Source: Amphiscolops sp. MND2022 (lineage: Eukaryota). From it: 64,000 nucleotides of DNA. A program made the translations under genes and the position numbers. Under the pieces are notes generated by a model. The model saw only the letters and a list, made by a program, of their open reading frames with translations, ran no database searches and was not told where the DNA came from. Where the stretch lies: the NCBI GenBank assembly GCA_964187785.1, contig OZ076413.1, positions 8,308,001-8,372,000 of the forward strand, written 5' to 3'. Below are positions 1-42,371 of the stretch, piece after piece (positions within the stretch are counted from its first letter, which is position 1; the number at the start of each line of letters is the position of its first letter).

Positions 1-1592
1 GGACCCTTATCATTCCGCCGGCTGACAAACAATCGGGGAATCGCATGGTCACTCATGGCTTTCGTCAACACGTGACGCTCCGTCTGCTTCCTTGATCGAT
101 CTTCATCCCGAGCCAACAGTTTAGCCTTCTTCACCTCTAAAGGATCCAGAACACGACCAGGATTGTTGACATCGATGATTTTCCCTTTCAAAAGACGAGA
201 CAACTCTTCAAATTCTAAACACAACACCAAGGGGCTAAACAAGTAACTACATACCACAACTCTTCATGCAGACAATCAAAAGATAGTGGCAAACAAAACC
301 ATCCCAAAAGAAACAATCGCAACAGTCAGGAAAGCCAAGCAATAGAATAATAACAACACCCTTACGTTTTGACAGGCTCTTCGTCTCTTTTAAAACTTCC
401 GTCCGTTCAGCTCGGGCAGCGCTTCGGGCCAGCATCACACACTGCGCCGCGGACATCACCATTGGCGAACCAGGAGGAACTGTATTCAGGCCAGCTGATA
501 ACAAATGAGCAAATTTAACAACACTGCGAAATGAGGCTAAACTACCACACAAAGAAATCGCACAACACGGAGATGACACAAACAGTACAACGAACATGAA
601 AATTTCAACGTACCTTTTTCCCAGTCATTGTAAACAACTGAGGCCTCCACCCCAACAGCGGCTCGTGCATGTTGAGTCCTGCCACGCTTGGACGACTCTC
701 CGGGGAGTTCAGAGACAGCATTACTGACAGGGGCAGGAGTATCAATCGCCGCCTCGCACACAAACACGTCACTGTCTTCAGAAGACCCAACCCCCGGTCC
801 AGGTTCTGCTCCAGTAACTGTAATACAAAATGAAGTATGACTAACAAGAAAATGCAGAACAAGTGTCCCTAAAAGCAACAAATGAACCCATTTCATCTAC
901 ACAACACCCGAAGAAAGAGAGCGAATACCTACTTTCAAGAGTCCGAGAAGCAGAAATCATGGGGGGCATGTAGTCATCTCCTGAACTGTCATGAGCGGAT
1001 GGCAACTTGGAAACGGAACCAGAGATGACGTCAGCCAACCGAACTCGATTTGCCGACTGCACACTTGTGGTCGACAACTCCCGACTAGCCCTTGGTTTCT
1101 TCTCCCGCCGGGACTTTGTACTACGGGTCGGGACATAATCCTCATCAGACCCATCATCGCTAGCTACAGAAAGTAGATGAATAGAACGCGTTCAACGAAA
1201 CCTAGAAAGGGCTGGCCACCTATTAATTTCTAGAAAAGATTACCTTTCTTCCGTGCCAAGTAGTCAATGTCATGGCGCTCATCACTGGTTGCAGAATGGA
1301 AAGACCCAGTTGCAACAATGCTCGCATGTTCTTCAACGCCGTCATCATCAGAAACTGCTTTTTCACCAAAGCCTGGCACATGCAGTTCTCCGTGACCAAC
1401 AGAGACACCAGCTTCCTCCTGATTGCCTCCACCACTCGCCTCTCCACTCTCATCATCACTGCCACCTCCACTAACTCTCTCCCCAACACGCACCACTGAT
1501 CCCACGACAGACTCTACTTCTGCCTCACTCTCCTTCAGACCGACTTCCTGACTTCGACACAGCACAGCATTATCCTCCTTCGTGGAGCTCAT
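1..1592 (-). CDS. 5' exons of element A antisense accessory gene (acidic/Ser-rich N-terminus leading toward the zinc-finger region)
   Basis: Exons 1592-1244, 1163-933, 817-614, 494-366 and 214-<1. Donors GTAATC, GTAGGT, GTACGT and GTAAGG pair with pyrimidine-rich AG acceptors; all four introns are phase 1 and keep one open frame. The last visible residues HAIPRLFVSRRNDKG resemble DGMPWARTFVSGLNP, which precedes the Zn finger in C. Confidence 0.75.
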
Positions 1593-4663: not shown

Positions 4664-4687
4664 ATTTCGCTACAAAAAGTACATCCC

Positions 4688-5833
4688 TGTCAGAACGTAC
4701 GGACGTCTCAGAATTGTGTACGTCTCTGTAGTTCTCTTCCCTACTGTTTGACATTTTATCAGTAAGGGCTCTCACAATACTTGTTAGTTCGCTAATTTGT
4801 CGGTTCATTTCCATAAACCGTTGCTCGATTCTATGTTTTTCATGGTCACGTTCAATCTCTCTCATACCATTCAAGTCCTCATTCCCGTCAATATTTTCAG
4901 CAAAGTGATCGGCAACACTCATGTTGTCCTCATCTCCAGAGTACTCATTCGTTTCTTCTCGGCTGAATCTGTTTTCTCTATTGAATCCTGATCGAGTGTT
5001 AACCATTGTTTAAAAGATACAAGTTGGTAAGATGTTTAAATTTGAATTGGTAAGTTTAATAAAATGAGCTAAGAGTTGTTAAAGTACGACTGTATTCCAA
5101 GGTGGTTAGTTCTACTGACTGGTTTGTCCTAATTGTGGTAGCACCTTCAATCTCATAATTACTCGCTAATTGCACCTGAGTATTTGAGTCTCTTCTTGTT
5201 TGATTGTTTTAGTAGACCTGCTGTTAGCACCTTTGTACGACTGGTCACTTCAGTCGTCACTAGTTACTATTTCGGTAATTCAACTCTAATGTCACATTAG
5301 TATGCGTCGTTAATTTCACTACTTCACAGCACGTGTTAATGATTGAGGTTTTGAGTATAATTACTGCATTTGATTACTGGTAATACTTCTGCAATTAGCA
5401 CTGAGTGTGGAATATGACTATAGCTTGGAGTCGTTTATAGTGATTCTACAAGGTTTCACTGAATGAATATTTTATGAATGATGCTAAATGAACTAAACGA
5501 TGCTTTAGGGATGAATTGTTAAATGTTTAAATATGGCAAACTGCATGTATGTTTAAGTAAGAAAGGTACGACCAGATATGCCAGTCGTTTGTACAATTGC
5601 CCAAAAGGTTGCGTTAAGAAATATGTAAAGCGGAAAATGCTTTTGTGCATTTTACAGAACTCAAATTGCACTGGTAGTTTGTGGCATGAATGAAATTGGG
5701 ATGACAACTTTGTAGTACGGTCGTCCATTATATGTATTTACATGTATTCTAAACTGTTTATGATTTAGTGTTTTAGCTGATTGGGGAGGACTTCATCTCT
5801 CAGTCGTTGTATCTCATACCAACTGGTATGACA
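4688..5833 (-). repeat. 3' LTR of element B (1146 bp)
   Basis: Direct repeat of 19059-20204 with about 7 substitutions seen by eye (~99% identity). It contains the Gag N-terminal copy seen as ORF 4653-5006. Confidence 0.97.
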
Positions 5834-6183
5834 CTCCGCCTCTTTGAAAAGAAATGAGAGCTGACGGGGGGGTGAAGTGGTGGGTAGCAGTAGGCGGGGT
5901 TGATCAAGCATTAGCTAAGTTACAGTTGTTTCGTAGGTGAAACTTTTCCTCACATGACGACTTCGGGTGGTCGTCGATAAGTTGATGCAGCTATTGACCT
6001 ACTGTCGAGTAATCGGAAGTAGAATCGGACTGTGACGTCATGAGTATCTTCGTGTTGGGAAGTGAAAGTAGTCAGTATTGAGTGGAATTCGGTATGCCAC
6101 GTCATCCGGTCGTGCGCTTGATGAGAGTAATTCGTCGAGTTAAGTAAATAGTGAAGGAGCGATGGCCGCGGCAGTCGGCTCAT
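5765..6183 (-). pseudogene. Probable disrupted ORF-X of element B, crossing the PPT into the 3' LTR
   Basis: ORF 6183-5950 plus a second open segment 5911-5765 (MLDQPRLLLPTTSPPRQLSFLFKEAECHTSWYEIQRLRDEVLPNQLKH) that runs through the PPT and ~22 codons into the LTR. Same position as ORF-X in A and C; sequence homology not evident. Confidence 0.4.
5834..5845 (-). promoter_or_regulatory. Polypurine tract of element B
   Basis: AAAGAGGCGGAG on the minus strand, directly abutting TGTCATACC of the 3' LTR. Confidence 0.9.
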
Positions 6184-6755
6184 TCGCAGGAGAGTGAATA
6201 CGTTTGATACAGAGAGTCGTGTATTCCGTTTTCCGTTTCCGTTACTCGTGCTTGAGTAAACAAATGGTCGCTGCAGTTGTTGTTGGCTTCGAGCTCAATT
6301 GTCGTTAGCATCAGTGTTGATCAAACTTTTGTTACTGCTTGTTGCTTGCTCAAATTCAAATTGGAATTCTTCGATTATTTTCCGGATATTGCTGTTCCCT
6401 GTTTATTTTGCTGCTTTGTTGTTCGAATTGCTTCGTTGATTAGCCTTACATCCTCTCATCACTTGTCCCTTTTGAGGTTGGGATCGAATATCTTCTGGTC
6501 TGATACATTATTATTTTTTGTACGTGAAAGTAGGATAGGGAAAAAGAAACGACTGCTATGCTCGGAGGTAGATTTCTTTCGTTGATTTTTCTCTTGTTGT
6601 GATTTATGTCAATCAGCATCACCTGTGGTGGTAACTTTTGAATACCAAAATACTAGTGAGATTAGAGCATGTAGTTGATCAGGCCACATATTCGATTTCA
6701 CCAGAACTGACTTGTTGAGTCGTCTTCCACTCCTTATTCTACCCTTTATCCCTGT

Positions 6756-9700
6756 ATGTCCGATCTTGGTGGTTCCTCCTTCGACCCTGATTTGTGGTCG
6801 CTTGTATCCCTCGCCGAGGAGAATTATCAGGAGATCGAAGAGATGGCATCCGGAATAGATTCAACTTCCGAAGAGGCCTTAGCCGAAGGGGCTGCTACTG
6901 TGCTGTCGCCCTGTTGCCAGTTTGCTGGGCGAGTGAATTCCGCTTCGCTGGGAGGGATGAGTGAGCTGCTTGAACTTGCTCTCTCCGAGGAATTCCGTAA
7001 GTACAAATCATTAGTTTTTTCTTCTTCCGTAGTGGGGGGGTCATATGTGAGTGTTTGCAACACATACTTCGCGAGTCGTGGATTGTTTCTCGCCAATCAT
7101 TTGCTCGAGGCTTTTCTATCTTTCTATGTTTTGTATTCTGCATTGGTCGTCTAGACCCACTTGTCGATGTAGGACTGTGTTTTGTCGTCATGATGAGGTG
7201 GTGACTTCCTGCTTGTTTCTTAGGCAATGTTGAGATGCCGACGTTACTCGAGTACGTCCGTGCCTTCCCACAGAGAGGAGGTCAAGCGAGTGTGTCCGCG
7301 CCAACTATACTGAGCGATCAAGTGCACCAGTTAATGCAATCGCAGTTGGGTTAGTATTCTCGTGTTTGTTTCTTCTGGTTGCACACGCTTGTAAACTTCA
7401 AGTAACATGGGCGATCTCGGCTGCTGTAGTAACTTCAGTTCGATAGGGAACTCTTTTTTTTTCAATCCGGGATAATCTAGAATGCTGGGTTGGTTTTCGT
7501 AGGTGTCGAAGACTGTGCTGTCCTGTCCTTGGACGATCTGCTGAACCGGGTAGAGGCTCGCATGGACAAGAGCGTGAGAGAGCTGAGCAAGGCTATTCTC
7601 GAGTCGTCCTTGGGTGAGCTTGGCACTGTGGGGGCCTTGCGTGTGGAGGAGTTTTGGCAGACATTCAGGGCTGCTCTTCAGGAGGTCGTTGCTAAGCGTC
7701 ATGTGGATTCGGTTCCTCGAGTGTCGACGCCTTCTGCAGAATTGCCGTCTTTGGAGCTGGCCAGTCATGGCACTGTCCCTGGATGCGGTGGTTCAGGAAC
7801 TGGGTCATTCGTTCCAACTGTGTTCGGTGGTCCTGGATCGGTCGCTGCTCCTAGCGATCCTAGTGTTGGGACGTCTGTTGTTCCGAGACCTGGTAACTAC
7901 TCTCAAGATCACATGTAATGTTATACTAATTGGGGGGTTAATCTTAGTCTTGTTAATTTTTTCTCGATGATTAGTTTGTTTGGGGGTGGGTAATGTATTG
8001 GTGAAACGACCGTATTTTCTGGTCATGGTAGTCAAGACTGGTGGTTGAACACGGGGGGTGAAATTTCTCTTATTTATTTTTGTAGTGTGTTTATGTTTTG
8101 ATTTTTCAGTGAGGAAGAAAAGGCTCAATACGCTGAAACCTTCCTATTTCGTTTCGAATGTGGTGGGACTGTTCGTTGGCTTCCCGCGTCACAAGCGCGT
8201 TATCGACGGGTTCGCGCGGTGCCTGATGTGTCGCGTCGATCTCAGTATAGCCGGACGAGGCCTCCAGAATCTCTGGGGACATTGGAAAGGTGCGGAGCAC
8301 ACGCGCTTAGAGCAGAAGTTCCGGATCATGACTCAACGTCCCTTACTTGACAAGTCATGTCGGCCAGTGTCCGCGGATGAGGACAAACGCATACGCCTGG
8401 AGAGGATGGTCGAGCCTCCAGTGTATTTGGAATCTCCAATTAGTTTGTCCCTTGAGGAACGTGTCTCACTGGAGCGAGAAGTAGAAGAAGAAGGTGTGCG
8501 GCCAGTTTTGCCGACAGCGAGTGCAGCTTATCTGTGGCTGTGTTTTTTCCTAAACTGTTTTGGTACTGTCACTGGTTTCCAGTCGCTGATTCGTCTGATG
8601 GATGGCTGGTCTGGCAGTATGAGCGGCGAGATGAACTTTGTGTCTCGGACTCTTTCTGTGCCCAAATGTCAGGTACCATAACGTTTTATGTGTGTTGTAT
8701 TTACTTCTAGCTTTTTCACCGGGGGGGGGGGGGGTTACATGTTTTCCTTTTGTATTTTACATGTTGTTACTACTTATTTGTTGTGTGGTTGTTTTTCATG
8801 GTTTCTTTATGTCGTTTTGTGTGGTTTAGAGCTTGCTGTTGTACGGGGTGTACCCTTACATTGTCGAAAAGATGGGCAATCTGTTGCAAAGAGGCAGTGA
8901 AATAGGCTTGCGCGTCTATTTCGATGGCAATTTCTGGCGGGTTGACTGCCATTTCGTCGACGACCTAGATGTGAAGTCTGTGACCTTAGTAACTTGGCCT
9001 GTATGTGAGCAGTGGAAGGAAGAGCTAATCCGCCTGGCTATCACTATTTTGTCGTGTCTGGAACCGTTACCTAGCTTGTGCAGTGTGGTCGTGGATACGC
9101 ACCTCGCCGTTGGGCGGGCGTTGGCTCATTTTGGCCCCGGTGGCAACTCCGTGGTCATGCGCGTTCATGATGTACAGTGGGTTCAGCGTGCTATTCGTCA
9201 GCAGTTTCGACAGCGGGTGGGCGGTCTGGACCCATACAATGTACTGGAGTTCTTAAAGCACCGCTTGTCGAGTGTTGTAAACGGGGCAGCTTTTGACAAG
9301 ATGCCATTATTGCGTCAGGTACTTGCTTTTGCTTGTGTTACTACATGTGTGTTTTTTGTGTTGAGTGGACTCTATTTAGTTTTGTTTTTTTTCCTATTAT
9401 TTTTTTACATGTGATTGTCTTCTTGTCTAGGGCTGTGATGTTCGGTTTTTCTTTTGGCTTATGTTTGACTGAGTAACTATGGATTACGGGTGTTGTTTTT
9501 CTTGTTTGCAGTACGTGCGCAGTGACGACTTAACACTTCCTCAGTCGGCGGCTGTCTGTGGGGAGCTTGTGGAGCGCTGGGACGATCTAGCTGTTTACTT
9601 CAGCAATGAAGGCAGTGGCTCCATGGTGGAGTTGAGATCTGTCCCAATCCTAAGCGTCGTGATTTTCAATGACCGATTGGCTAGACCGCAGATGGCCATG

Positions 9701-11170
9701 TTGAGGTGGTTGCTAGACGAAGGTTGGTAGCCTAATTTTGTGTTTTTTGAGGTTTTCTTCTTTTTTTTTGTTCGTGAAGTGTAGATGACTGTGGGTCGAA
9801 GTGTTCGTTTAGTCGTTTGCTTACGACAGGTGTATTTGCTATTCTCAGTGCGGGGTAGGGTCTATTTTTGTATTGAATGCATTATACTGTTAATGTGTGT
9901 TTTTGTTTTAGTCGTAGCGTCTTTTCCTCGGGGGTGTACGTACAGTCGAGACCGAGATCTGAGCTTCGAAGTGGAGTTTGTGTCCTTCCTTCGACGACTG
10001 AGGTGTATGGTCCAGGATGCGGACAAGATCCCAGCTGCTTATGACCATGAACGTCTTCTCAGCACTAGGCCTGTTGAATTGGGAACTTTGTCTCAAGAAC
10101 GTTACCAAGCACTGTTTGTGCAGTATTTTCGCTTCGACGTGCGTGATCATTAACGTGTTTTCTACCGCGAGATCCAGTTGTTTTTGGCAAAACTCTGTGA
10201 AGACCTAGTAGCCGAGTATCAAACTGATGCTGAAGGACGATTGAATGTAACTGCTTTCGCTCCCGAGGCAATGTTCTATCGATCAAAAGACCGTGTGGTC
10301 GACGCACTTATGGATTGCTGTTTGTTGCTAACGCGCTTGGGATTTCTCGGTGATGTTCAAGGCGCCAAAGTCGTCCAGCAATACAACGATGTGTATAGCT
10401 ATTTTATGCATCGATGGCGAAGCCAATCGTCTTCTGGTCCTGTGGTTGATGACGTGATAAGCCTATGGCGGGCCTATCCCTTCTGGTCGCGTTGCAGTGA
10501 CTTGCTGTGTGTCTTCAAAGTTGTGGTCTGCTGTACTACCCGAAGTCAGTATGTGGCTGATTTCTTGGATGTTGGGTCCACTGCTCTTTCTCAAGGATAG
10601 TTGTTGTCCAGCATGAATCTGGTGAGGAGTTGGACAAGCTCTGGCGTTATTGGTGGTGCTCGCAAACTCATGGCTGGTTTCCTTCGTCATTGCGAGACGA
10701 CTGATATGCATGTCTCTCGGCTGATGGATCCCGAAAGAGGAAGACCGTGGGATCAGCTGTTGAAAGTTGGGGTCGAAGACGTGCTGGCTCGGTGTTACCG
10801 AGTGTTGAACGAAGGAACTGTTAGACCTGCAGGAATTTCAGTTGACGAGTATCGATCTGCAGTTTGCGAACAGTTAAAGAGCGGTTCGGATGATGCGATT
10901 GGTCAGCTTAGAGGTCGTTCGCGGAATTCTGCTTCTAAAGGGTCTGCCTTACAATTTTCTGTCTGTGATGATGAACCACTAATTCGTCACGTTGCCAGTG
11001 GCAAGCGACCTACATCTCAGAAGGACGTTAGTTTGCCGTCGACATCCCGTTGTGTTAAAGGAAAAAAGAAGTCTGCTGGTGTTAAGCCTAAGACAGTTGT
11101 GCCGCCTAAGAAGTCCTACAAGCGGAAGTTAACGAAAGTCCTCATGAGTGAGTCGTCTGAGGAATACTAG
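6756..11170 (+). CDS. Element B antisense, intron-containing accessory gene (~1039 aa; BED-like Zn finger plus hAT-transposase-like body; one in-frame TAG)
   Basis: Exons 6756-6996, 7503-7892, 8110-8672, 8830-9318, 9512-9722, 9912-10138 and 10172-11170 sum to 3120 nt (1040 codons). All six GT-AG introns are phase-compatible (1,1,0,0,1,0) and mostly T-rich. Motif CLMCRVDLSIAGRGLQNLWGHWKGAEH; premature TAG at 10598-10600. Confidence 0.85.
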
Positions 11171-12883
11171 TCAGTTGGAGGAAAGAAAAACATTTTGTCA
11201 TTGCTTGTTGAAGAAAAACAGTTTCAGTTGTTTACATGATTTGTACTTGAAAAACTTTACTTACAACTTAGGTTTCACTTTTCTCTTGTGGGCATTTTTA
11301 CATGTCTTTTTGTGTTACTACTTTGCATCCTGTATATGTTCATTGTATGTTGTGGTTTTATTGCTGATGCTGGGCGATTTGTTGGATTTGCTTTTTTACT
11401 ATGCTGTTCTTTGCATGTTTTTGCATGGTTGTTTTGATCTTTTGACAATTGTTACATGTTTTTAGTTACTTAGATCGGTCCATCTTGTATGTATCTTCCT
11501 TTTTGCGGGCACGGATAGTATTTTCAGTGTGTCCAGAAACAGAAAATACAGTCATTGACTTAGAACTTTCTTTTGTCCTAGAGTAGAGCTCTGCAGGTAG
11601 TGTGGTTTTCAAACATATCGGCTATCATTTTTCTTCGGTGTAGTTGGTGACTGCTCGAGAATGGTAACGAGACGCTTGTACCATGGCTCTTTTGGCCTAA
11701 GCACTGCATTGCAAAGTGGGTGACTGGGCAGCTTGCTCATTCCAATGCTTGAACGTCCAAGGAGTGCACCCTTGGTTTAAGACTTAACTTATTCAGCGTG
11801 TGATTTTGTTTTCATGTGTTTTTCTCTAAGGCCTAAGTTGCATGTTTTTACTGTTCTTATTACATTACATGAAATTTTTCGTTTGTAATGACGTCATCAT
11901 CGTTGGTGTGTGTCTTGTGACGTCACCACTCGTGATGTGTGTTGTTTTTGTTGAGACTTTTGGAAATGTTACGTTATGGTAATGACTATGGCTGGCGGGC
12001 TGTAGTTGACTATTGTTTTTAGTCGTGTTCGCGCTGAAAATTATTTTCGAGGGTAAGGCCACGGACTCCCTAAATTTTTGTCAAGGCGAGGCAAAGCCTA
12101 CGCATTTTTGGTTGGTTCAAGGGGTCGGGCGTTCATGGTTTTATTGTTGTTGGCCGTCCGTTTTTTTTGTTTGTTTTTCTTTAGCAATGTTCGGTTTATT
12201 GTAAGGTGAATTGCCGTCGCAACCACCCATTCAAAACTAACACTGAATCCAGTTGCTAAAGAGCAACCTTCATCTGTATGTTGACGACCAACCACACAAG
12301 CACGTTTTTTGACGACGCACCCACACAGCCAGCTCTATGATTTCAAGGTTAAACGAGTGGGGCTTAGTTGCGTTGTCTTAACGTTGGCGGGACAGCAGAT
12401 CGTTCCTGTTAGTTTGTTGTGCGTTTTGGGAACGTTATTTGCGTTCACGTTTCAGTAGTTGGATTGGAATAGTTCCAGATTCAAGATATTTTACTAGTAC
12501 TGTGGCTATGGTAATTTTGGCGTGAATTGCATAAATTATCTCGCGTTAATTCGTGTGGTACATGTATTTCCGCATCGCACTTTTTATGACGACTAGTGTT
12601 CGCCGTCGTTGCGTTTCCGTCCGTTCATTCTTGATGGCAGTTAGCGTTCAATTATAGCTTAGCTCGCATCGTGTTGACTGGAAGTAATGGTTGTTTGATT
12701 AGTTGTTTTCTAAATTGAGAGTGTTTGGTGAGTACTGTAATTGTAAAACAATTACCTTCAAGTTTTATAAGTGTGACTATCATGACTGCTATTAGCAGTC
12801 GTTGGTGGTGTTTTTCAAGATTACTAAACTACGGAAAGGGAAGTTGTATTTCTAGTGTGATTTAGGAGACTTATGAACGACTT

Positions 12884-15800
12884 TCAGTGTAAGTTGTTGT
12901 TTTGTAGAAATTTCTGTAAGACAGGTTTTACTTGAAGTTCATGCACTAAGAAATCTCGGTACGTTTTCGGTGCAGGTTGTGGCCTTAGATTGTACCGGGT
13001 GGTGTTGTTGCGTGACGTAACCGGCGCTTCGTCGTTATTGTTTGGCAGCTCGTGTTCGTGTGTTGCAGATTGATCAGGTTCATCCTGATATTCGTCGTCT
13101 ACTCGCGCGCTAACGACTGAGTCGTCAGTTGGTGGCACGAAAATTTGGGGAGGATTTTCAGTTATTGGCTGTGTTTGTGATCGGTCTGACGACCTTTGAG
13201 CATAGTCGTAGTAGATAATACCGTGTTCGGTATCAATTTCTTCAGGTAGTGGCAATGCGGGTGTTTGTTCAAAATGTATGGTCTGAGGTAAGTGGTCGTT
13301 GAACATGTCTTGGTCATCGAAAGCTTCAGGGTCGGCAAAGAAGAGATTTGGATCTTCTTCGATGTCGGGTATAGGTGCGTTCGGGATGAAAGGTCGTAAA
13401 CGCATTCTGTGAACGCACTGTGTGCGGGAAGTGCCTATTTTTCTCACTATGTAGTTGAAATTAGTTAAAGTTTTTACTACTTTGAAAGGGCCTTCCCATT
13501 TAAAGTGGTGGAATGCGATTTTGTCCGACTGGTCGGTGATTTTCGGATTGAGAAGGAAGACGAAGTCATTAACTTTCAACGGTGATGCTTGAGCCTTACG
13601 GTCGTAGTACCTTTTTTACTTGTGGTAAGCTTGGAGTATGTTATCGTTTACTTGTTTGTACTTTTCGTTTAGTTGGTCAATCAACTTCGTCAAATCAGTG
13701 TCTTGTGTGCGGCATTGTAGGGGGTTGCTGAACTTAAGGTCTAAGGCGTTGAACGGGACTCTACCATGAAACACTTCGCTCGGGGTACACTTAAGTGATT
13801 GGTGGTAGGTCGTGTTATGAGCCATAACTGCTAAGTTAACGTACTTGTCCCATTGGGGAGAGTCAGCTGCAACATTGATTTTCAGTATCTGTTTTAGCTT
13901 TTGGTGGGTACGTTCAACCATTCCTATGGTTTGAGCATGTTTTACAGTTGCGTGTTCGATTTGGATTCCGGCAGTTTTCATTAGTTCGGTCATGATGTTG
14001 GCTGTGAATGGTGTTCCTTTGTCAGTGATGATGGTCTTGGGTACGTAGGCGTGACGAGTGAAGATTTGTAACAGTGCGTTGACTACTGATTTCGTGTCTG
14101 GTTTGCGGATCGGGATAGCGAACAGATAGCGCGAGAAATAATCGCACGCCGTCAGAATGTGCGTATATCCGTTTGAGCAGGGTAGTTCACCTACCAGGTC
14201 GATTTCAAGTATATCTTCTGGACCGTTGCAAGGGTCATAGATTTTTTCGAGAGGTGGGGTTAGACGTTTTGGGTTGACAGGTTTAGCTTTTAGGCAGTCT
14301 GTACAGTTGCTAACAAAGTTTGAGACGTGTTCACTGAGGTTAGGTATATAATAACGCTTGCGGAGTTCTACCAACATTTTGGTTGTCCCAGGATGTCCCT
14401 GCATGGGATCGCCATGCATCGTCCTGATTATGGGCAACGTAGTTTCTGGAGGTACTACGATTTGTTTAAATAGAACTCTACCAGTGTTATCGAAAAACTT
14501 CCTGTACAGTACGTTGTTGACTACTTCAAGGCGTCTCTTGTTTTTTACAAGTTTTTGAAAGAAAGAGCTAGCAAAGTTTACGTGGTTAGGGAGGGGTTCG
14601 TCGTTAACTAGGACTCGGACCATTTTTTGGATGTCCTGGTTACTTAGTTGGTCCTGGTTTATTTGAGAATTCCCTTGCGGTCATACCTGGTTTACCGTGT
14701 TGGGGTGTTGTTTTCTGGTAAACTTCGTCAGTATGATTGAGGGGGTTTCGCCTGCTAGCACTAGCTCGAGGTGACGACTGATGATCTGGATCATCTTGGT
14801 TCGGTCAACGTCATGTTGATCCTGGGTGTTCGCGAGCAGGTGCAGTAGGGACTGCATTTGGTTGAGTGCGTCATTGGTGTCGTTTGTTTCAGGGTGATTC
14901 TGCTCCTGGGACTCATTTGGCTTGGCGTCTTGTGGTTGATCAGGGTCGTAGTCTTCTTCATCATCATCTTGTTTCGGGGTTTTTGCAGCTAAGTCGATTT
15001 CGATGTAGTGGACAGGGATCTGGTCGTTGAGTTTCAAGTGTATTCTGTCCTCAGGGTTGATGTCGAGCCTAGACAGGTAGTCGGCGGCTGGATTTTCTAC
15101 TCCTGGCACATGGGCTAATACGAAATCGAATTGCAGAGCTTGGTCGCAATGGTTCCACAATTTCGGTGGAATTCGCTTTGATTGGAAAAAGCGGGTTAGC
15201 GCTTTGTTGTCCGTCATCACGATTGTGGGTTTCTTGACTCCACATAGTATGTGGGCGAATTCATCGAAGGCGAAGTGCATGGCTAAGAATTCCTTCCCGT
15301 ACATAGTCAATGACAATTGGCCTTCGGTGAATCGTTGGGATCCAAAGGCGACGGGTGCATACGTCTTCTTCTTCTCGTCGTTGTTCTCGGTGTAATCTTC
15401 AATGAGTAGCACGTATCCTGCTGCGTGTTCGCTGGCATCACACATGATGACGAGTTGTTTGTCGGGCAGTGGCAATCGGAGTGACAGTTTTGCTGCTCGT
15501 GCTAAGTTTTCATTTATGTCGAAGATCGCATCCTTGTGTACCTGTGTCATTTCGAATTTCACATCTTTTTGTAGAAGTTTGTACAGTGGGACTAGCTTTT
15601 CGGCCAATTTCGGGATGTATTGCCTATAAAATTGGACGAAACCGATGTAACGTTGCAGTGATTTTACTGATGTTGGAAGTTTGAGTTTTTTGAGGAAGTC
15701 ATCAATTCGTTTTTCGAGAGGTGCAACGCCTTCAGTTGTTATGCTACGTCCCAGAAATTCGATCTTCGGGTGTCCGAAAGCGCACTTTGACATCAAGAGT

Positions 15801-17836
15801 TTCAGTCCTGCTTTCTGGATCTGCTGGAACACTGCTTCGATGTTGACAACCAGTTCGTCCACGTTGTGTGCAGCTCCCCCAATGTCGTCGACGTATTGTG
15901 CACATTTATCTGCTTTCACTAGTGCATCAAGATACTCGCGGATTGTGCTGTTGAATGCTGAAAGTGATCTATTCAATCCTTGAGCAAGACGGAGGTATGC
16001 GAAGGTTCTGCTGCCAAAATTAAATGCGAGGAGCTGGATTGACTGTTCATCGGCCATCTGAAGGCAGTGGTAAGCTTGTGAACAGTCGAGCTTACAGAAG
16101 TACTTCTTGCCAGCCATGTGTTGAGCGGCGTCTGCTATCGTAGTGACCGGGTGATTGTGCTGGTTGTAGTCGTTCTTGAGGAGGTGGTTGATGCGTCTCA
16201 AGTCGACTAGGATTCGCAATTTTCCATTGGGCTTCCGTTGGGCAAATATCGGGGACGAGTATTTGCTGTATGGAAGTGTGGTGATGATGCCGTATTCTTG
16301 CATCAGAGCCAATTCGACGAGGAGGTCGTCCTTCAGGTTAGTCGGGGTCGGTAGGCTCTGTGCGTACACCGGGTCATCATGCTTGGGTGTCAATTTCATT
16401 TTGAAATCGGTGTTTATGCCTATGTTGAGGCGGTGACGAGCAAAAATCGTGTGGTATTTGACCAATAAGGCTTCGATCCGCTGTTGTTCTTGTTCGGTGA
16501 GGGTTTAGTCGTCCCAGCTGAAGTTCTTCAGGAACGTCCTTCGTTGGTCGTCGTCGCGTGTAGGGTCAAGTTTCTCAGCTTCACGGAGTTGGATAGTCTC
16601 ATCGTAAATACGGCGTTCGATTTTGTTGAGTTTTTCAGGATCGTCGCATGTTTCGGGTGTTGGGTACCATCTTTTGTCTTTACTTGAGTCTGGTTCTTGA
16701 AACAGCTGATTTATGACATTGGTGGCTTCATCTGGGAATTTTGTGATGAGTGTTAGTTGTTCACTTGTCATTGGTTGAACATTTTTTGCTTGGTTTGGAG
16801 TTAAGATGCGGAAGACTGCCACTGTTGTGTTTTGGGGAATCGTTATTGAATGGTCCAAATAGTTGGTGATTTGGACGTGTGTCTGCTGGTCGTTGATCTC
16901 GGACATCGATGGGGACACTAGAAGTTCCGTCTTGCGTTCGAAAGCTGGGAATGCCTCTACCGTGCCTGTCACTTGGCCGATGTCTTTTTCTGATGTCACC
17001 GGAATGAAGACTTGTTGTCGTGGTTGTATTGTCGTCTTCTGTGATGCTCTGAGTTCCAACATCTGCAATTTGAATTTCCCATTTTGTGGTCTCAACTGGA
17101 GTGTAATTTCTGGAAATCTAACGATGTTGTTTGCAAGGTCCAGGGTTACGGAATATTTCTTGAAAAATGACATTCCAATCAATATGTTTCCCATTGTCGG
17201 TAAGATCATGAAAGTCTCTTCAAAGACTTTTCCTCCGATAAAGAACCGAAGGAGGACTTGCTTCCGGACTGGAACTATACTTCCGTTAGCAATTTGCATT
17301 TTGAAGTCCGGAGCAGGGTACTCTTCAAGTTGGGCCGCTGGGTGGGCTTGTAATATTCGGCGTAGTTCGTTTTCGGACATTGCGCTTTGGATAGCCCCTG
17401 TGTCTAGCAGTCCTTGGTTTTCATATGCTCTGAATTGGAGGGGGACGTAGAGCATTTTGTTTCTTTTGTCTAGCTGGAGTGTTGCAGTGAGAGGCTTGAT
17501 GTTTGTCGTCTTCGGGTTATTTGACGACTTCACTTGTGGTGGGTGTTTCGAGTCTCGTTTTGCTGGTCGGGTAGTCTTTTCGCTAGTTCGTGAGTCCCTT
17601 GGTTCACAGTCCTTTGTTGTACATGAAGGGTCGTCTCCAACTAACGGGAGAATGTGGTAGTTGTTGTGTGACACTTTGTGTACATAGTATTTCTTGGGTA
17701 GTTTAGTCTGGGGGACAGAATGCTGCCGACATTCTGGCGTGTGAGTCTTCGAGTCGTAGTAGTGGTTGATTTGTGGTTGTTTGCGCGCACTGTTGGTCTG
17801 GGTGTGTTGGGGATGACGTGGCTTTACAAGTTTTTT
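12884..17836 (-). pseudogene. pol: pol of element B (protease, dUTPase-like fold, RT, RNase H, integrase) in one frame with three nonsense codons
   Basis: PR LLDTGAIQS; RT QYVDDIG; RNase H CDASEHAAG..EFLAM..TDNKAL..ADYLSR; IN HGDPMQGH..CTDC with IDLVG/TDKG/GMVERTH. ORFs 16505-17674, 14681-16465, 13616-14623 and 12884-13579 share a frame, separated by stops at 16505, 14681 and 13616. Confidence 0.95.
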
Positions 17837-19377
17837 GAATTCTGGGTGAATTCTTCATTGTAATCCTCGTCGTAGTAATCGTTCTGGCCTTCTGTCTGTG
17901 TTGTTTCACTTGTTGCTTGGGCTACGTAGTAGGGTTGCTGTCGTGTGTTCTGCGATTGGCGGAGGTCTCGTCTGAATTCGCGGTTCTCCGTTGTTGACTG
18001 CTTCTGGTAAGGTACATTCTGGTAGGCTGATGCACCTGGCACGCGGTCTCGGCAATCTCGTGCAGAGTGTCCGACCTTGCCGCAGATTTGACACACCAAT
18101 TTTGGGTTATATCGGGTTTTGTCAGTCTGGGATTGTTGGTTGTTGCTATCTTGTTGAGGGCGTTGATAGGTTTTGGTGTGGATTCCGTTTGATTCATCCC
18201 GGAGGCGTTTTCGACAGTCAATCCACTTGTGACCAACTATGTTGCAAAATCTGCAATTGCCTTCGAATTTTCGTTTGACTTCTTTATTTGCATTTGGTTT
18301 CGCCGCGTTGTTGCTGGTGGAAGTCGTCTGTTGGTTTGTTTGTTGTTTGGCAGGGTAATTCTGAATGTTGTTCAGAGGCTGCATTCCCGCGTTGTTCGGT
18401 AGCAGTTGTGCGTACTGGCAACGTCTCTGAACGAAGGTCTTGATTTCTTCGCTGGTAGCGTCGTGCTTTCCTGCCATCGCTAATTCATTTTGTATCTGGA
18501 TTGGCAATTTGGCAAATAAGAAGGTTTCTGCTATGTCGTTTGCTTTTTCACCGTACGCCTGTTTTGCCAGCTTTTTAAACTTCGTCAGGAAGTCGGCAAA
18601 TGACTCCGTTGTCGGGTCGTACCTCATTTGATCGAACTTGTACTTCGATACTTCTTTGAGGTCTTCTTTGGCGTATTCCTTGCTGAATGCCTGGAGTATG
18701 TCGGTGAGTGTTGTTTCGGTTGTTATTTTCAAAGTTTGCCAAAATTCAATGGCGTCGTCCCTGAGTAAGCTTTGGAAGTAATTTAGCTTCTGTTCTTCCG
18801 TCAATTTGTGCATGTGGGGCCGGAGATGGTTTTTGAGTAAGTGTTCAAACTCGTTATATTTCTCTCGGTTCCCACGGAATAGGGGGACTTGTGTTTGGAG
18901 TATTTTTGGCTGGATCACTCCATCAACCATTGTTGTTCTGAGGTGCTGTATTTCGGACATTACGTCTCCCATCTGTGGGTCGAGCAGTGAAGGTGGAGTT
19001 CTTCTTGGCGGTTGGGTATTGGGTGTGGGCGGTGGGTTCGCCAAGACTCCTGTCACCATGTCAGAACGTACGGACGTCTCAGAATTGTGTACGTCTCTGT
19101 AGTTCTCTTCCCTACTGTTTGACATTTTATCAGTAAGGGCTCTCACAATACTTGTTAGTTCGCTAATTTGTCGGTTCATTTCCATAAACCGTTGCTCGAT
19201 TCTATGTTTTTCATGGTCGCGTTCAATCTCTCTCATACCATTCAAGTCCTCATTCCCGTCAATATTTTCAGCAAAGTGATCGGCAACACTCATGTTGTCC
19301 TCATCTCCAGAGTACTCATTCGTTTCTTCTCGGCTGAATCTGTTTTCTCTATTGAATCCTGATCGAGTGTTAACCAT
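17824..19377 (-). CDS. gag: Gag of element B (517 aa, two CCHC zinc knuckles)
   Basis: Intact ORF with CRFCNIVGHKWIDC and CQICGKVGHSARDC. The first 106 codons lie inside the 5' LTR. Confidence 0.95.
   Translation of the reverse strand: MVNTRSGFNRENRFSREETNEYSGDEDNMSVADHFAENIDGNEDLNGMREIERDHEKHRIEQRFMEMNRQISELTSIVRALTDKMSNSREENYRDVHNSETSVRSDMVTGVLANPPPTPNTQPPRRTPPSLLDPQMGDVMSEIQHLRTTMVDGVIQPKILQTQVPLFRGNREKYNEFEHLLKNHLRPHMHKLTEEQKLNYFQSLLRDDAIEFWQTLKITTETTLTDILQAFSKEYAKEDLKEVSKYKFDQMRYDPTTESFADFLTKFKKLAKQAYGEKANDIAETFLFAKLPIQIQNELAMAGKHDATSEEIKTFVQRRCQYAQLLPNNAGMQPLNNIQNYPAKQQTNQQTTSTSNNAAKPNANKEVKRKFEGNCRFCNIVGHKWIDCRKRLRDESNGIHTKTYQRPQQDSNNQQSQTDKTRYNPKLVCQICGKVGHSARDCRDRVPGASAYQNVPYQKQSTTENREFRRDLRQSQNTRQQPYYVAQATSETTQTEGQNDYYDEDYNEEFTQNSKNL
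17830..17836 (-). promoter_or_regulatory. Putative -1 ribosomal frameshift heptamer A-AAA-AAC (element B)
   Basis: TCA AAA AAC TTG TAA at the gag end. The -1 frame is open (KKLVKPRHPQ...KVSHNNYHILP) and continuous with the protease ORF. Confidence 0.85.
19047..19058 (-). promoter_or_regulatory. Primer-binding site of element B
   Basis: TGGTGACAGGAG directly after the LTR CA, identical to the PBS of C. Complement CTCCTGTCACCA looks like a tRNA 3' end, possibly Leu (inferred). Confidence 0.9.
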
Positions 19378-20204
19378 TGTTTAAAAGATACAAGTTGGTA
19401 AGATGTTTAAATTTGAATTGGTAAGTTTAATAAAATGAGCTAAGAGTTGTTAAAGTACGACTGTATTCCAAGGTGGTTAGTTCTACTGACTGGTTTGTCC
19501 TAATTGTGGTAGCACCTTCAATCTCATAATTACTCGCTAATTGCACCTGAGTATTTGAGTCTCTTCTTGTTTGATTGTTTTAGTAGACCTGCTGTTAGCA
19601 CCTTTGTACGACTGGTCACTTCAGTCGTCACTAGTTACTATTTCGGTATTTCAACTCTAATGTCACATTAGTATGCGTCGTTAATTTCACTACTTCACAG
19701 CACGTGTTAATGATTGAGGTTTTGAGTATAATTACTGCATTTGATTACTGGTAATACTTCTGCAATTAGCACTGAGTGTGGAATATGACTATAGCTTGGA
19801 GTCGTTTCTAGTGATTCTACAAGGTTTCACTGAATGAATATTTTATGAATGATGCTAAATGAACTAAACGATGCTTTAGGGATGAATTGTTAAATGTTTA
19901 AATATGGCAAACTGCATGTATTTTTAAGTAAGAAAGGTACGACCAGATATGCCAGTCGTTTGTATAATTGCCCAAAAGGTTGCGTTAAGAAATATGTAAA
20001 GCGGAAAATGCTTTTGTGCATTTTACAGAACTCAAATTGCACTGGTAGTTTGTGGCATGAATGAAATTGGGATGACGACTTTGTAGTACGGTCGTCCATT
20101 GTATGTATTTACATGTATTCTAAACTGTTTATGATTTAGTGTTTTAGCTGATTGGGGAGGACTTCATCTCTCAGTCGTTGTATCTCATACCAACTGGTAT
20201 GACA
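19059..20204 (-). repeat. 5' LTR of element B (1146 bp)
   Basis: TG...CA, followed on the plus strand by TSD ATCCC; copy of 4688-5833. Confidence 0.97.
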
Positions 20205-20722
20205 ATCCCAAATCGGTTTTTCATTTTCCACCCAAACCAAATACCCAAACCGGAACATTAGACCCAAACCAAAACTTAAGACCCCAACCAAATCGATTTT
20301 TTATTTCATCCAGGTACTTGGTGTCCCTGTTATCCTCTAACCAGTTTTCGGCTTTTGATAAAACAAACTCATTCAGAAATTTTTGCCTCCTTTCTAAGCT
20401 TTTTAAAATCTTTTCATATAGCAGAGTAATAAATCAATCCAAAGGATTCTCCTTTTCACTGTTGTCGGTTAATTGAAATTATTAGAACTTTCGTAGTTTC
20501 AGCAAAGATTTCTTATCACCATCGTATAGGCTTCAAATGATTTTAAGTACACAATTTTCCCTCACAACATCTTTGCTTGATAGACCAGGACTAACGATCA
20601 GACTTTAGAAGTTTTCTTTTTCTGTCGCTTTTGACAATAAAACACGAGCATCTTAGACAGAATTGAAGCGTTGACCGAGTATGTCACAATAATTTATGTA
20701 GACCGAACAATTGAACCATTGG

Positions 20723-22265
20723 TGTCCTAACCAAATTCATCATCACTTTGTTGAGAATCCAATGAATTTTCTCTACAGTGATTTGTTTGGTTACTTTTGT
20801 TCGATATTAATCTTGGAAACTCCTTCTGAACATTCTGAGCTGATTTATTAACATTTTCTGGATGCAGTCTATTTGACCGAAGGTCCTTCTGAGAATTTTC
20901 TGGGGCTGCATTGTCTTGATGCAGTCCATCTGACCGAAGGTCCACACTTGTATTTTTTGCTGAATTCTGTCTCCTGACGGCATTTTCGATGCTGGGCAAC
21001 ACTCCAGTGTCAATTGCAGTGTTTATAACATCCAATATCTGAGAATTTAAGTTTGATTGTAATTCTTCGAACTTCCCTGACATCTGTGACGAAATTTCTG
21101 AGCTAATAGCCTTACTAGTTTCAACAGTCAGACAACTATTTTCACTCAGATTAGTATTCCAGTAGGACCTGTAGTTGTTTTCATTTTCATTTGAACTACC
21201 TTCTCGTCTATTTGACTCTGAGTCGATTTCATTTTCACTAGTTCTATCTTGTATTTCACTGTTATCCCTTTGATAACTTCCCAACATAACATCGAGATTT
21301 TCAATATCTGAAATGACGTCAGATTGACATGAGCGTTTCTCTTTAGCTTTTTGCTTTCTAGTTGAAGGCATATTCAAAAGAGGAAATTCAGTTCAACAAT
21401 AAATTGGTGAAAGTTTCGAATGAACAAGGTTGTGTATTTAGCGTATTTCGTTTATCAAAGAATGATACCTCTTAGATCAAGTTCTGAGTAATTATAGCTG
21501 TAACAGTATGACAAGTATAAATTCGCACGCCATGTTACTAAATTTGGATTGAGGTCAGTCTAAATTTAGCTCTAACCTAGTCACTAGGTCATCTGATTCT
21601 AAATAAAGACTGTGGGTGGTGACATTGCGTCACTTTAGGGGGGGAGGTTATAAATAGTATCAAACTAACAACATATCAATTTACATGAAACTAATTCTAC
21701 TTCAAAAGCAACAGTTCATGAGGCGGCAACGTCAATATTTATCAATACATCAAATCTGACCTAACGTCAGCATGACTGCAGTGGATATTCCACACTGCAT
21801 TCTGATTGGTTGAAATAAAGGTTTGACTACACGTCGATTTGACTGCAGTAGTTTATCAGCTAAGTGTTTTACGCTTTCATGCATGTTACGCTGTATTTTA
21901 AGGCACTTCCAAATTAGTTCTATAGAAAAACTATGAAACACTTATATCAAATACTTTCAGTACAACGTATGAATAATAAGAGGATTGCAGTATGTTGTAT
22001 AAAATGGTATCGAACCAGCACTTGTCATAGTTCAAATGTGGAGTTGCTGTCCCGGTGACCTATGGTCAACTTGTAGAAAATACATGATGTATAAAATAGT
22101 GAATATATAGGTTTCAAAGTTATCAGTTTACATCAGTTTATTATTGTAAACCTTCTTAGGTAGGCAGAAGAGTTTATATGGGCTAAACCCCCGGTCGTGG
22201 GTTAGTTCGGTCACTTTCGGGAGTTATTTGGTAGAGAATGCCGTCACAGGCGACAGCCTGCGACA
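20723..22265 (-). repeat. 3' LTR of element C (1543 bp)
   Basis: Direct repeat of 36010-37546 with more substitutions and indels than the B LTRs. Carries the Gag-N copy (ORF 20727-21377) and the C-terminus of ORF-X. Confidence 0.95.
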
Positions 22266-24754: not shown

Positions 24755-27700
24755 ATGGATTTTTATGCAGGAAGTCAACCGCGCTCATTCATTTCTTTCC
24801 GTTTAGGAGATATTTCAAACGGCCAACCAGCTCAGAATACTGGAGATAATATGGAAACAAGCCAAACTGGAGTTGACGTCGCTGAACAGGAGAGCGATCG
24901 TACAGAAGTTGCCATTGAGGTGTTTGAGATCATCTTAGCTTCAACCGAGCCTGACGAAACTAAGCAAAATAATTTGCCGACAAAAGTAGCTACTCTTGGA
25001 CAACTGTCAAGCCCTCAAGTCAAGAAAAAGCTGAATGCATTTCACTGTTAGCTGAGATGTACCGTTGAGGAGGTTTTGTTTTCAGCAGCAGTGGCTCGGA
25101 TGAGAGCGTGGGCGCATATTGTGCCAGAAAAGTCGAAGCCATGAGTCCTAGCAAAATTCAGTCCGAGACAGTCAAGCACTGTTCATCACCGAAGGCCAGT
25201 TTTAGTGAAGCTATCCGTCTCGCTCCCGTCGGCCAAGTTATTGAGACTTCTGGACAAACTGAAGGGCCAACACTGGATGATCTTCTCCTCTCCACTCCCC
25301 AGCTACATCCTAACGTTCAAGACCTAGGACAAGGAAGTAAACTTCCCAAAAGTAAGGTCAACATTGATACCTCTGAAATTGTGTTTGCATTCTCCCCTGC
25401 CCTGGAACATCGTGTTCTGAGTTGTGCTTCTACATCAGGTCATGTGGACCCACCGTCCAATGCTGTGTCCGGAGGGGAAGAGTTAATGTCGAATGGTGAA
25501 ATTGAAGGGCCTGCGAACACGGACTTAGAGTCAGAACACTTCAAGAGGTCTACACTCGCTGACGCTATTGCTACCCCAGTTCGCAACTTTGCCCCCCGAT
25601 TCAGTGAAGGATCAGATCATGTTTCCCCCGATGAGGCCATTCAGCGTTCCGGAAGACCTGCTCCCCTTTCAATCCACAGTCAGGAACTCATCCGTACTTA
25701 TTTTTAAAAGGCTCATTCGTTCAGTTTACCCCAGGGCCATCCTACTATTTCTCTCAACCAAGAACAGATAGGTCATATTCTCCGCATCGTTGCAGACGAG
25801 ACGGCCCGGGCTTCGTTTGAGATGCTGAAGAGTGTAGTGACCCGTGCCAGCCAATTGAGTCTTCGAGATTCTCCCACTTTGCGGAAGACGCAGATGCACG
25901 GCCCTTGTCTGTTCGTTCATGTACAACTGGGTCAGAAGGAGACCGGACGTCATTTGGGATTGATGATGTAGGACGGGACATTGATAGCAGAGGGACAACC
26001 TGTGGAGGTGACTTTTGGGGTGACGAAGACACTGGAAATTGTTCTAGTCGTTTGTCGACCATGCAGGTACCCAGTCCTCCCGTTTCCGGCAGTAGTAGAA
26101 CTGATTTAGTTGGTACCCCTAATCCAGGCGCATGTGAAATTCCCGGAAACCAGACTATGGCCGAACTAAAGCAAGAAGTCTCCAAGGCCAAAAATAAGGG
26201 CCGCAAGAAGCCCACGCCCAAGGGTAAAGTGGAAAACCCTCGCAGAGCTGTGACTAGATCTAGTAGGATCCTCAGGGACGAGCTTTTAGATGGGATGCCT
26301 TGGGCGCGCACATTCGTATCTGGTCTGAACCCTTACAATTTTTATTGTCAAATTTGTGAGGGGAACGTCTCAATATATTGTCGAGGCGTCAAAGAACGTT
26401 TGAGACATCACTCTACCGAACGTCACCTCCGCAAAGACCAAAGGTGGCGATATGAGCACCTTTCAGTCGAAGATTCTCTTACTAAAGCTATACACCACCA
26501 GGTCAGAGATGGAAGGGGTCAGGTGCTATCTACAAATGATTTACAGAAGGAGTATCAATAGTTTAAGGACGCTATATTAGTGGACATCGGGGAAAAACTG
26601 CCGTACTACCATGAAGCCATGTCTGGTAATACCCACATGAATTCCTCTTCGGAAAATCGAGTCAGGGTCCAGATTTCAATTCTTCGCCACTTTCTTCCGT
26701 CAGTTGGTGACCTTGGACAACTTAGAGGATTGTGGCAAGATGTTGGAGTGGTTGTCAACCACCAAGCCCTCTTCTCAGATTTCAACTGGGGCAAGGAAAG
26801 ACTTTCCGTGAGTACTTTCAATTGATTCCGAAGATACTTCCTTGTTGCAGCATGACTATCAAGGTTTGAAGTCGTATCACTGTATAACCATAATTAGTTG
26901 TATCTAATTTGACTAGTCGTCCTTCCGACTGCATCGTCTCATTGAGTGTGCTCTTCATTTACTTAGTCGTAATCATCTTATGTTCCAGGTCTTGTTCCAT
27001 CACATTTTCGTCCAAGTGCTTGATGATATTGGTCACCACGTCGTGTCTACCAGTTTCTACGCAGTGGAGTTCGAAGTGAAGGGTGTTTTCCTCTTCCTCC
27101 CTTTGAGATTCTGGAAGGACAAGCAGCTTTGCCGAGTTCTCCGGGTCCTAGGAAGAACCTCAGCTGAAGTTGCCTTACTTTCAGGTCATTTAGCAGCCAT
27201 TTCCACAAGACCCTCTCTAGTTTCCTGTAGTGGGTGCTCATTGGAATTAGTGCAGTTAGTGGACAACAGTTCCCTATTCCCCTTGGCCATCCAGAGCCCA
27301 CAGAGCTTCGAGGAACTTTTTCTTCAGAAGCTTATGAACAAGCGTACCCATTGTGTCTTTGGGCGGATTGACTTTGTGTCAGTCTTACAGTACCTGGTCG
27401 TCTTCCTTGGGGGAGCCTCAGCTTGGAGTTTGTCCTACTTGCTCCTGAGTTGTCAAAGGCTAGTTGACGGTTTTCACATGTGGTCTGGTCTTCACTAGTT
27501 TATCATTTCATGTTTCATGTTTGGTTTTAGGCAATCCGGAGTTGCAAGTTAGATTTTGCCAAATTGCATGTGTTATGCGAAGAGCTACTGGCCAACTGGA
27601 GTTCTGTCTTGAAGTTCTTGAGTGCGAATTCACTTCCCCAAGAGATGCAAGGAATAAAGAACCAGGTATTTTATTCGTGACCAGAGTACTAAATGTCCAC

Positions 27701-29440: not shown

Positions 29441-29657
29441 TTGTACACATGTACAATTGTTTATAGACTGCATATTTTGTTCAATTTCTTCTTTATACTT
29501 TTATTTCTAACAGTTAGATTGTGTATTTGTTTTGTTGGTCATTTGTTCGTGTCAATTTTGACACCAAGTCTTGTTCTGTCTGGAAGTCGGACCAAGCCCC
29601 ATAAAGATACTATTTATTGGAAAAGAGTCCGGGGGGCAATAAATTCAACTTTTCTGT

Positions 29658-41447: not shown

Positions 41448-42371
41448 GAGATAACATATGCTCAAGTATCATAGGTTCCAAAGCGAAGTTTGTTTGTATG
41501 ACAACTTTAAGTTCTCGGTATCGACTAATCATCGCAAATGAACTACCCCACCGCGTGGCACTATATGTCATCGGACGCAAAGTTGAGAGATTTCTCAATT
41601 TGGCAGCAAGTTCCAGGGTCCTGAGTTTTGTCATTATGTTGTGAAGTTTTACGATGATCGGCATGACATCTGCAATGTAATCATTCACAGCTAACTGGAA
41701 TCTATGTGAAGCACAAGCGATCATAGGTTTTTTCATCTTCTCGGCAATTGATTTATTGACCTCGCAGTTGTCGGCTATCAATGCAACATTATCAGGTGAC
41801 TTGCCATAGAGTTGAAAAGTCTCGTTTAGTAATTCTATGTGCTGGTTAGCTCCTAGTGTTGTCTCGTCCAGTAGAGGACTGAAGGCCAAAAGGGCTATTT
41901 CGTGAGAGACCTTGAGATAACATATGCTCAAGTATCATAGGTTCCAAAGCGAAATTTGTTTGTATGACAACTTTAAGTTCTCGGTATCGACTAATCATCG
42001 CAAATGAACTACCCCACCGCGTGGCACTATATGTCATCGGACGCAAAGTTGAGAGATTTCTCAATTTGGCAGCAAGTTTCAGGGTCCTGAGTTTTGTCAT
42101 TATGTTGTGAAGTTTTACGATGATCGGCATGACATCTGCAATGTAATCATTCACAGCTAACTGGAATCTATGTGAAGCACAAGCGATCATAGGTTTTTTC
42201 ATCTTCTCGGCAATTGATTTATTGACCTCGCAGTTGTCGGCTATCAATGCAACATTATCAGGTGACTTGCCATAGAGTTGAAAAGTCTCGTTTAGTAATT
42301 CTATGTGCTGGTTAGCTCCTAGTGTTGTCTCGTCCAGTAGAGGACTGAAGGCCAAAAGGGCTATTTCGTGA
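41448..42371. repeat. 466-bp tandem duplication inside the hAT transposase
   Basis: 41448-41905 is repeated at 41914-42371; CTTGA microhomology at the junction. Confidence 0.92.

Follow-up and report, generated by a model that had tools for sequence, protein, structure and literature searches.

The DNA analysed here, hereafter the window, is a 64-kb stretch of contig OZ076413.1 of Amphiscolops sp. MND2022 (positions 8,308,001 to 8,372,000, forward strand), and it includes element B, a 15.5-kb Ty3/gypsy-type long terminal repeat (LTR) retrotransposon in which a large gene with introns lies antisense to gag-pol. Its assignment to this type follows from a pair of LTRs with TG..CA termini and a target-site duplication (TSD), and from the order gag, protease (PR), reverse transcriptase (RT), RNase H (RH) and integrase (IN) on the minus strand at 12884-19055, where Pfam matches to Retrotrans_gag, zf-CCHC, RVT_1, RT_RNaseH, Integrase_H2C2 and rve were found. 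Since gag-pol occupies the minus strand, the 3' LTR is the left one in the window (4688-5833, minus) and the 5' LTR the right one (19059-20204, minus); the TSD, 5 bp reading ATCCC, can be read directly at 4683-4687 and again on the other flank at 20205-20209. The two LTRs are 99.2% identical across 1153 aligned bases (blastn), in agreement with the identity of about 99% and the intact TSD reported in the original prediction, which had been made from the letters of this locus. The 7 kb or so that separate the 3' LTR from pol, which ends at 12884, hold a chain of plus-strand open reading frames (ORFs) and no notable minus-strand ORF, and a search of the whole element against Rfam returned no match.

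A six-exon gene antisense to gag-pol

The antisense gene occupies 6756-11170 on the plus strand, between pol and the 3' LTR. The original prediction had assembled it from seven ORF segments and six introns into a protein of about 1039 amino acids, and its arithmetic is exact: joined in frame at GT..AG sites, the segments add up to 3120 nt, or 1040 codons, among which is a single TAG (10598-10600). Five of the introns stand (6997-7502 to 9723-9911), whereas the sixth (10139-10171) does not, and the seven exons are replaced by a corrected model of six exons and five introns, with 3153 nt, 1050 codons and a protein of 1050 amino acids. The sixth intron was checked because it measures 33 nt against 157-506 nt for introns 1-5, which have GTAAGT-like donors and pyrimidine-rich acceptors. 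The stretch is open in all 28 other copies of the element that cover it, the window copy alone having a stop there, and it codes for 11 residues that are conserved, with constant length, between the two subfamilies described below. It is coding sequence and not an intron, and it resembled one because the window copy has a private stop codon within it.

Exon 1 (6756-6996), whose ATG is kept in 26 of 27 copies, encodes an acidic N-terminus and is followed by intron 1 (6997-7502; 506 nt, phase 1), which has GT..AG in every covering copy. Exon 2 (7503-7892) supplies a linker rich in Ser, Gly and Pro and, after intron 2 (7893-8109; 217 nt, phase 1), exon 3 (8110-8672) encodes a zinc finger of the form C-x2-C-x16-H-x5-H (8220-8300), preceded by a basic patch. 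Intron 3 (8673-8829; 157 nt, phase 0) separates it from exon 4 (8830-9318), for which an RNase H-like domain is predicted from the fold, and intron 4 (9319-9511; 193 nt, phase 0) leads to exon 5 (9512-9722), which has the top nucleotide identity between subfamilies (83%). Intron 5 (9723-9911; 189 nt, phase 1) precedes exon 6 (9912-11170), of 419 codons including the stop, which contains the former sixth intron and encodes an all-helical region with a basic C-terminal tail; all these features lie on the plus strand.

The window copy itself is dead. Its antisense gene has two private premature stops on the plus strand, one at codon 712 (10151-10153), where all 28 other copies, like the majority contig from the DNA runs, have a sense codon, and the TAG at codon 861 (10598-10600), again a sense codon in every one of the 28 other copies and in the DNA-run contigs. 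The original prediction had recorded the latter correctly as an internal TAG that sister copies might read as sense, and had missed the former, which its false intron bridged. Because of these two stops the copy is unable to make the antisense protein. Its pol frame has three more in-frame stops (16505-16507, 14681-14683 and 13616-13618, minus strand), for a total of five nonsense mutations despite LTRs that are 99% identical; one of the sister copies, from subfamily B, has a single uninterrupted pol ORF of 1453 amino acids.

Sister copies and selection within the genome

Sister copies were sought in the window's own genome (1.07 Gb), and 29 copies were aligned with MAFFT. Subfamily A consists of about 20 copies with 97-98% identity to the window copy, and subfamily B is a second set of copies at about 72% nucleotide identity. 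The spliced frame is open (1049-1050 amino acids) in 10 of 18 full-length copies of subfamily A and 2 of 8 of subfamily B, that is, 12 of 26 overall. More than 20 copies dispersed over many chromosomes all retain the introns, in keeping with the proposal of the original prediction that these had been carried through retrotransposition, and all ten splice dinucleotides are conserved in both subfamilies.

Comparison of subfamilies A and B separates exons clearly from introns, with 0 gap columns in every exon (71-84% identity) and 13-133 in each of introns 1-5 (55-70% identity); intron 1, for example, has 127-133 gap columns against 0 in its flanking exons. Over 1050 codons the nonsynonymous divergence (dN) is 0.12, the synonymous divergence (dS) exceeds 2 and is saturated, and dN/dS is 0.03-0.05, while differences at codon positions 1, 2 and 3 number 166, 85 and 546 and protein identity is 80%. 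In the same pairs gag and pol have dN/dS of 0.04-0.11, and judged by these ratios the antisense gene is at least as constrained as gag-pol. Among young copies within subfamily A its dN/dS is higher (0.3-0.9), which is expected if selection acts on the transposing lineage and not on inserted copies. Sister copies and selection both indicate that a genuine multi-exon protein-coding gene lies antisense in this LTR retrotransposon, as had been predicted, and across the subfamilies and the distant lineages considered below they make a strong comparative case that the introns are spliced and the product translated.

It could still be argued that the antisense transcript itself is what matters, as a regulatory RNA or as a source of double-stranded RNA against the element, with the reading frame being secondary, given that antisense non-coding transcripts occur in other retroelements such as micropia and TART (PMC7264820). 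The third-position excess, the low dN/dS and the indel-free exons beside indel-rich introns are signs of selection at the level of the protein, and this explanation is very unlikely.

Divergence between the subfamilies is not uniform along the element. When window positions 4685-20208 are compared with copies C7:57131000-57150900 and C13:12384000-12403900 (G000), a mosaic is seen, in which the LTR and the antisense gene have about 70-71% identity (dS above 2 in the gene), and gag-pol together with the 1 kb downstream of pol has 82-92%, with dS of 0.35 for integrase, 0.6 for RT and 0.9-1.1 for PR and gag. Such a mosaic suggests recombination between lineages, which would have swapped a module made of the LTR and the accessory gene onto a closer gag-pol. 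That LTR and gene may move as one module is suggestive, as it would fit a protein working on its own LTR.

Deeper lineages and database relatives

Database searches and fold predictions were made with natural intact sister copies, exon by exon. A phmmer search with the last exon against 1.8 billion representatives retrieved 131 clusters, all of them nameless ORF-level fragments of at most 497 amino acids from ENA assemblies, and searches with exons 3 and 4 likewise returned nameless ORF-level fragments. Three of the relatives, L031, L032 and L042, belong to this genome as further element lineages (L031 matches its chromosome 7 at 100% identity); they have the layout of LTR, antisense gene and pol on the opposite strand and share 30-60% protein identity per exon with the gene described here. 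A fourth, L041, comes from a different assembly and keeps the six-exon layout; it matches this genome at only about 70% in exon 3 and is therefore from another organism. A last exon with 21% identity is found on a marine-biofilm metagenome contig.

The positions of the introns are conserved over the same distances. A GTAAGT or GTGAGT donor stands at the homologous position after exon 1 in four distant lineages, and homologous GT or AG sites are present in distant lineages for the intron 1 donor, the intron 2 acceptor, and introns 3-5 at both of their ends. Every ORF fragment in the exon-4 alignment runs past the end of the exon by one Val, corresponding to a donor GTN, and then diverges. Three candidates for intron loss in other lineages, longer database ORFs extending over exons 3 and 4, were rejected, P0309 and P0317 being in-frame read-through of intron 3 and P0318 an internal deletion. 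Most copies carry the antisense gene, as do diverged lineages, and it is not a one-off transduction. Comparison across these lineages demonstrates that the gene has been kept under strong purifying selection through several element lineages and at least one other organism.

These data also bear on the suspicion that the ORF chain is a product of chance or annotation on an antisense strand that is T-rich and poor in stops, a suspicion to which the one false intron among the six originally proposed and the lack of a Pfam family might lend some weight. The tests of selection and conservation, and the 131 database clusters of homologous last-exon ORFs, refute it, and its probability is negligible. 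The claim of the original prediction that the joining pattern goes beyond chance holds by a wide margin, since the exon/intron pattern is matched by selection signatures in independent lineages.

The window contains other retroelement sequence. Element C (LTRs at 20723-22265 and 36010-37546, 94.7% identical) belongs to a different gypsy lineage and has a plus-strand ORF chain at about 24755-29680, antisense to its pol, in which the ORF at 25821-26558 (plus) encodes a C-x2-C...H..H finger and matches the exon-3 profile weakly (E 0.0024); the chain may be a very distant relative of the antisense gene or an analogous accessory gene. For element A (window 1-1592), neither tblastn with the full protein (E of at most 1e-3) nor three exon hidden Markov models (HMMs) found any similarity to the antisense gene. 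Tandem duplications with units of 319-321 and 458-466 nt and 99.6-100% identity lie at 27474-28113, inside the pol-to-3' LTR region of element C, and at 41448-42371.

Protein domains and possible transposase descent

The protein consists, in order, of an acidic N-terminus, a Ser/Gly/Pro linker, a basic patch, the finger, an acidic stretch, the exon 4 domain and a helical C-terminal part of 490 amino acids that ends in a Lys-rich tail. The zinc finger is its best conserved part, and of its ligands in exon 3 (C37, C40, H57 and H63) the first is invariant and the others are present in at least 90% of the sequences in the exon-3 alignment (A3). The only Pfam family to recur among 32 exon-3 homologs is zf-BED, which matches six of them below threshold (best E 0.006), and features listed for this exon by Atlas are zf-C2H2_12 or zf-BED and BED/ZBED5.

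The AlphaFold model of exon 4 (predicted local distance difference test score, pLDDT, 77) has the order beta-beta-beta-alpha-beta-alpha-beta-alpha, an RNase H-like topology. A Foldseek search against PDB places the Hermes hAT transposase first (E 8.6e-4, TM score 0.40), and the matching AlphaFold database (AFDB) clusters are mostly DUF659, DUF4371, ZBED, BED-type and hAT-dimerisation proteins, with some MULE proteins. By shape, Atlas returns ZBED1-RNase-like and ZNF618, and by features a MULE/ZSWIM RNaseH-like group (0.95, 173 shared features), with no HMM match to PF10551 or PF21056; molluscan sequences are the most frequent Atlas neighbours of exons 3 and 4, and the neighbours of the RT are uninformative as to the host. 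Structural alignment of the exon-4 model with VIA-align gave only generic RNase H-like, Pelota, S11 and actin-like matches, and profile searches of PDB sequences with alignments A1 and A3 gave none. The model of the last exon has weak AFDB-cluster matches to hAT C-terminal proteins (TM score 0.2-0.39), with no Pfam match to PF05699.

The domain order and the fold matches suggest that the gene descends from a DDE transposase (hAT type, or MULE) and lost catalysis: hAT transposases and their derivatives (Hermes, ZBED, DAYSLEEPER-type) have an N-terminal C2H2/BED-like finger, an RNase H-like core and a long helical C-terminus, an order that corresponds to the one predicted here. Several observations speak against taking this as proven. 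No Pfam match above threshold was obtained for the exons, the intact sister copies, the 32 exon-3 homologs or 10 distant last-exon homologs; the last-exon model is poor (pLDDT 58), and found no PDB match by Foldseek and nothing usable in an Atlas shape search or a VIA-wide search. In contrast to hAT transposases, the gene has no conserved DDE catalytic triad. At the ends of strands 1 and 4, which are the places of the first two catalytic Asp residues in DDE enzymes, the residue varies across lineages (D, C, A, G, T or Q after strand 1; D, E, G or S after strand 4), and the third is not placeable. On the sequences and models considered here, such a descent is plausible and unproven, with the odds about even.

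The same matches to transposase-type RNase H and BED-finger folds and features would be expected if a hAT-type DNA transposon or a host gene had landed in, or been transduced into, an ancestral element as a passenger with no role for it, and LTR elements commonly undergo nested insertion and gene transduction (PMC7264820). A passenger should decay, yet dN/dS is 0.03-0.05 over the full length at saturated dS, and lineages with as little as 30% identity, and another organism, retain the frame and every splice site. Again in contrast to hAT elements, no inverted-repeat pair (terminal inverted repeats) flanks the gene, and the candidate catalytic acids vary, so selection has not been for transposition of a DNA element. 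A mere passenger is accordingly improbable.

Putative promoter and transcript ends

The region upstream of the gene (5834-6755, plus strand) aligns between the two subfamilies as closely as the exons (about 72-77% identity), and it is a putative internal promoter and 5' untranslated region. A palindrome, TGACGTCA, is found in it at 6033-6040 and, 66 nt beyond, a half-site, both conserved with fixed spacing in subfamily B. Eight such palindromes, which are CRE-like, occur in the 64 kb, against about one expected, and lie mostly in retroelements (positions 1026, 6033, 11889, 11918, 21314, 23910, 36601 and 48506).

At the other end, homology between subfamilies A and B stops exactly at the stop codon of the gene. 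Further on, between the two convergent genes, a non-coding block at 12171-12470 is 83-92% identical between A and B, gapless and without codon periodicity; it is better conserved than most coding sequence and carries AATAAA on the sense strand of the element. As RNA its structure is unremarkable (z = -1.2), and Rfam has no match to it.

Proposed explanation

We consider that element B is a dead copy of a Ty3/gypsy family whose selected antisense accessory gene probably encodes a DNA-binding protein acting in trans, a reading to which we assign a probability of roughly 0.85. Retroelements are copied through their sense-strand genomic RNA, and only that RNA is reverse-transcribed. On it the introns of the antisense gene would read CT..AC and be invisible to the spliceosome, and they would survive each round of reverse transcription because they are functional only on the strand opposite to the template RNA. 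The gene would be expressed from integrated DNA by a separate antisense transcript, probably starting within the 0.9 kb of conserved sequence that separates the 3' LTR from the ATG. Its basic patch, C2H2 BED-like finger, RNase H-like domain, helical half and basic tail suggest a nuclear DNA-binding factor, which may act in trans for the element, for example in LTR transcription, integration or targeting, and selection would operate via the success of copies encoding it.

Some points weigh on the other side. Transcription and splicing of the gene are deduced entirely from comparative sequence, and the function of its protein is an inferred one. In the contigs of four DNA runs no joint skips an intron, and the three minor joints seen are internal deletions with sides of 20-26 nt; the genome has no 40-mer that spans junction 4 or 5, with up to 3 mismatches allowed, and there are therefore no processed copies. 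There is no TATA box upstream of the gene, and neither AATAAA nor ATTAAA is found within 1 kb after the stop (11171-12200, plus strand).

A more ambitious version of this explanation would be that a Ty3/gypsy clade recruited a catalytically dead hAT-type transposase gene, introns included, as an obligatory antisense accessory, and that the protein binds the element's own DNA (e.g. a co-evolving LTR) and thereby controls its transcription or integration. We regard this as a tentative idea, with the odds somewhat against it.

Relation to known antisense genes and significance

Plants are the main source of the antisense extra ORFs known in LTR retrotransposons, whose origin and function have yet to be explained (PMC7264820, PMC11963269). 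The closest in arrangement are the additional antisense ORFs (aORF-3R) of plant Ty3/gypsy elements, those of the Retand/Tat lineage, maize Grande (gene23) and rice RIRE2, which lie between pol and the 3' LTR, occur in most copies and across lineages, and are suspected of a nuclear or DNA-binding role (PMC7264820, PMC11963269). The antisense ORF of Grande is transcribed under a promoter of its own that lies upstream of it, and plant aORF-3R are described as single ORFs, with introns unmentioned, most of them with the plant-only TRP28 domain PF04195 (PMC7264820, PMC11963269). The gene of element B shares with them its position, its antisense orientation and its spread over copies and lineages, and differs in its length of 1050 codons, its five introns, its BED-like finger and predicted RNase H-like domain and its non-plant, probably marine host, and in lacking TRP28, for which no exon or homolog gave a Pfam match.

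A second point of comparison is HBZ of HTLV-1, whose coding sequence lies on the minus strand of the provirus and which is expressed from its 3' end through a spliced mRNA and acts as a nuclear regulator that helps persistence. It is a small bZIP protein whose gene has one intron and a promoter in the 3' LTR. The likeness lies in antisense coding at the 3' end of the element and, as predicted for the present gene, in a spliced mRNA and a nuclear role; the difference lies in a bZIP protein and one intron against a finger, an RNase H-like domain and five introns, and no similarity of sequence or domains was found. In retroviruses, antisense genes of this sort undergo splicing and have regulatory roles. 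HBZ is cited in PMC7264820 and PMC11963269. A search of the accessible literature found no multi-intron antisense gene with a BED finger and an RNase H fold described in a gypsy element.

The family is unannotated, all of its 130-odd database relatives are nameless ORF fragments, and gene finders that mask repeats will miss it. What makes it distinctive is the combination of a large multi-intron gene, selection at the level of gag-pol, deep conservation of intron positions, and a recognisable finger and RNase H-like fold. It provides a clean natural example of introns that survive retrotransposition through their orientation, and a tractable candidate for studying how a retroelement accessory protein works. 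If transposase descent is true, it would show a protein from one class of mobile element co-opted by another class and, if a hAT-type gene was recruited as outlined above, the gene would be an invertebrate counterpart of the retroviral antisense regulators.

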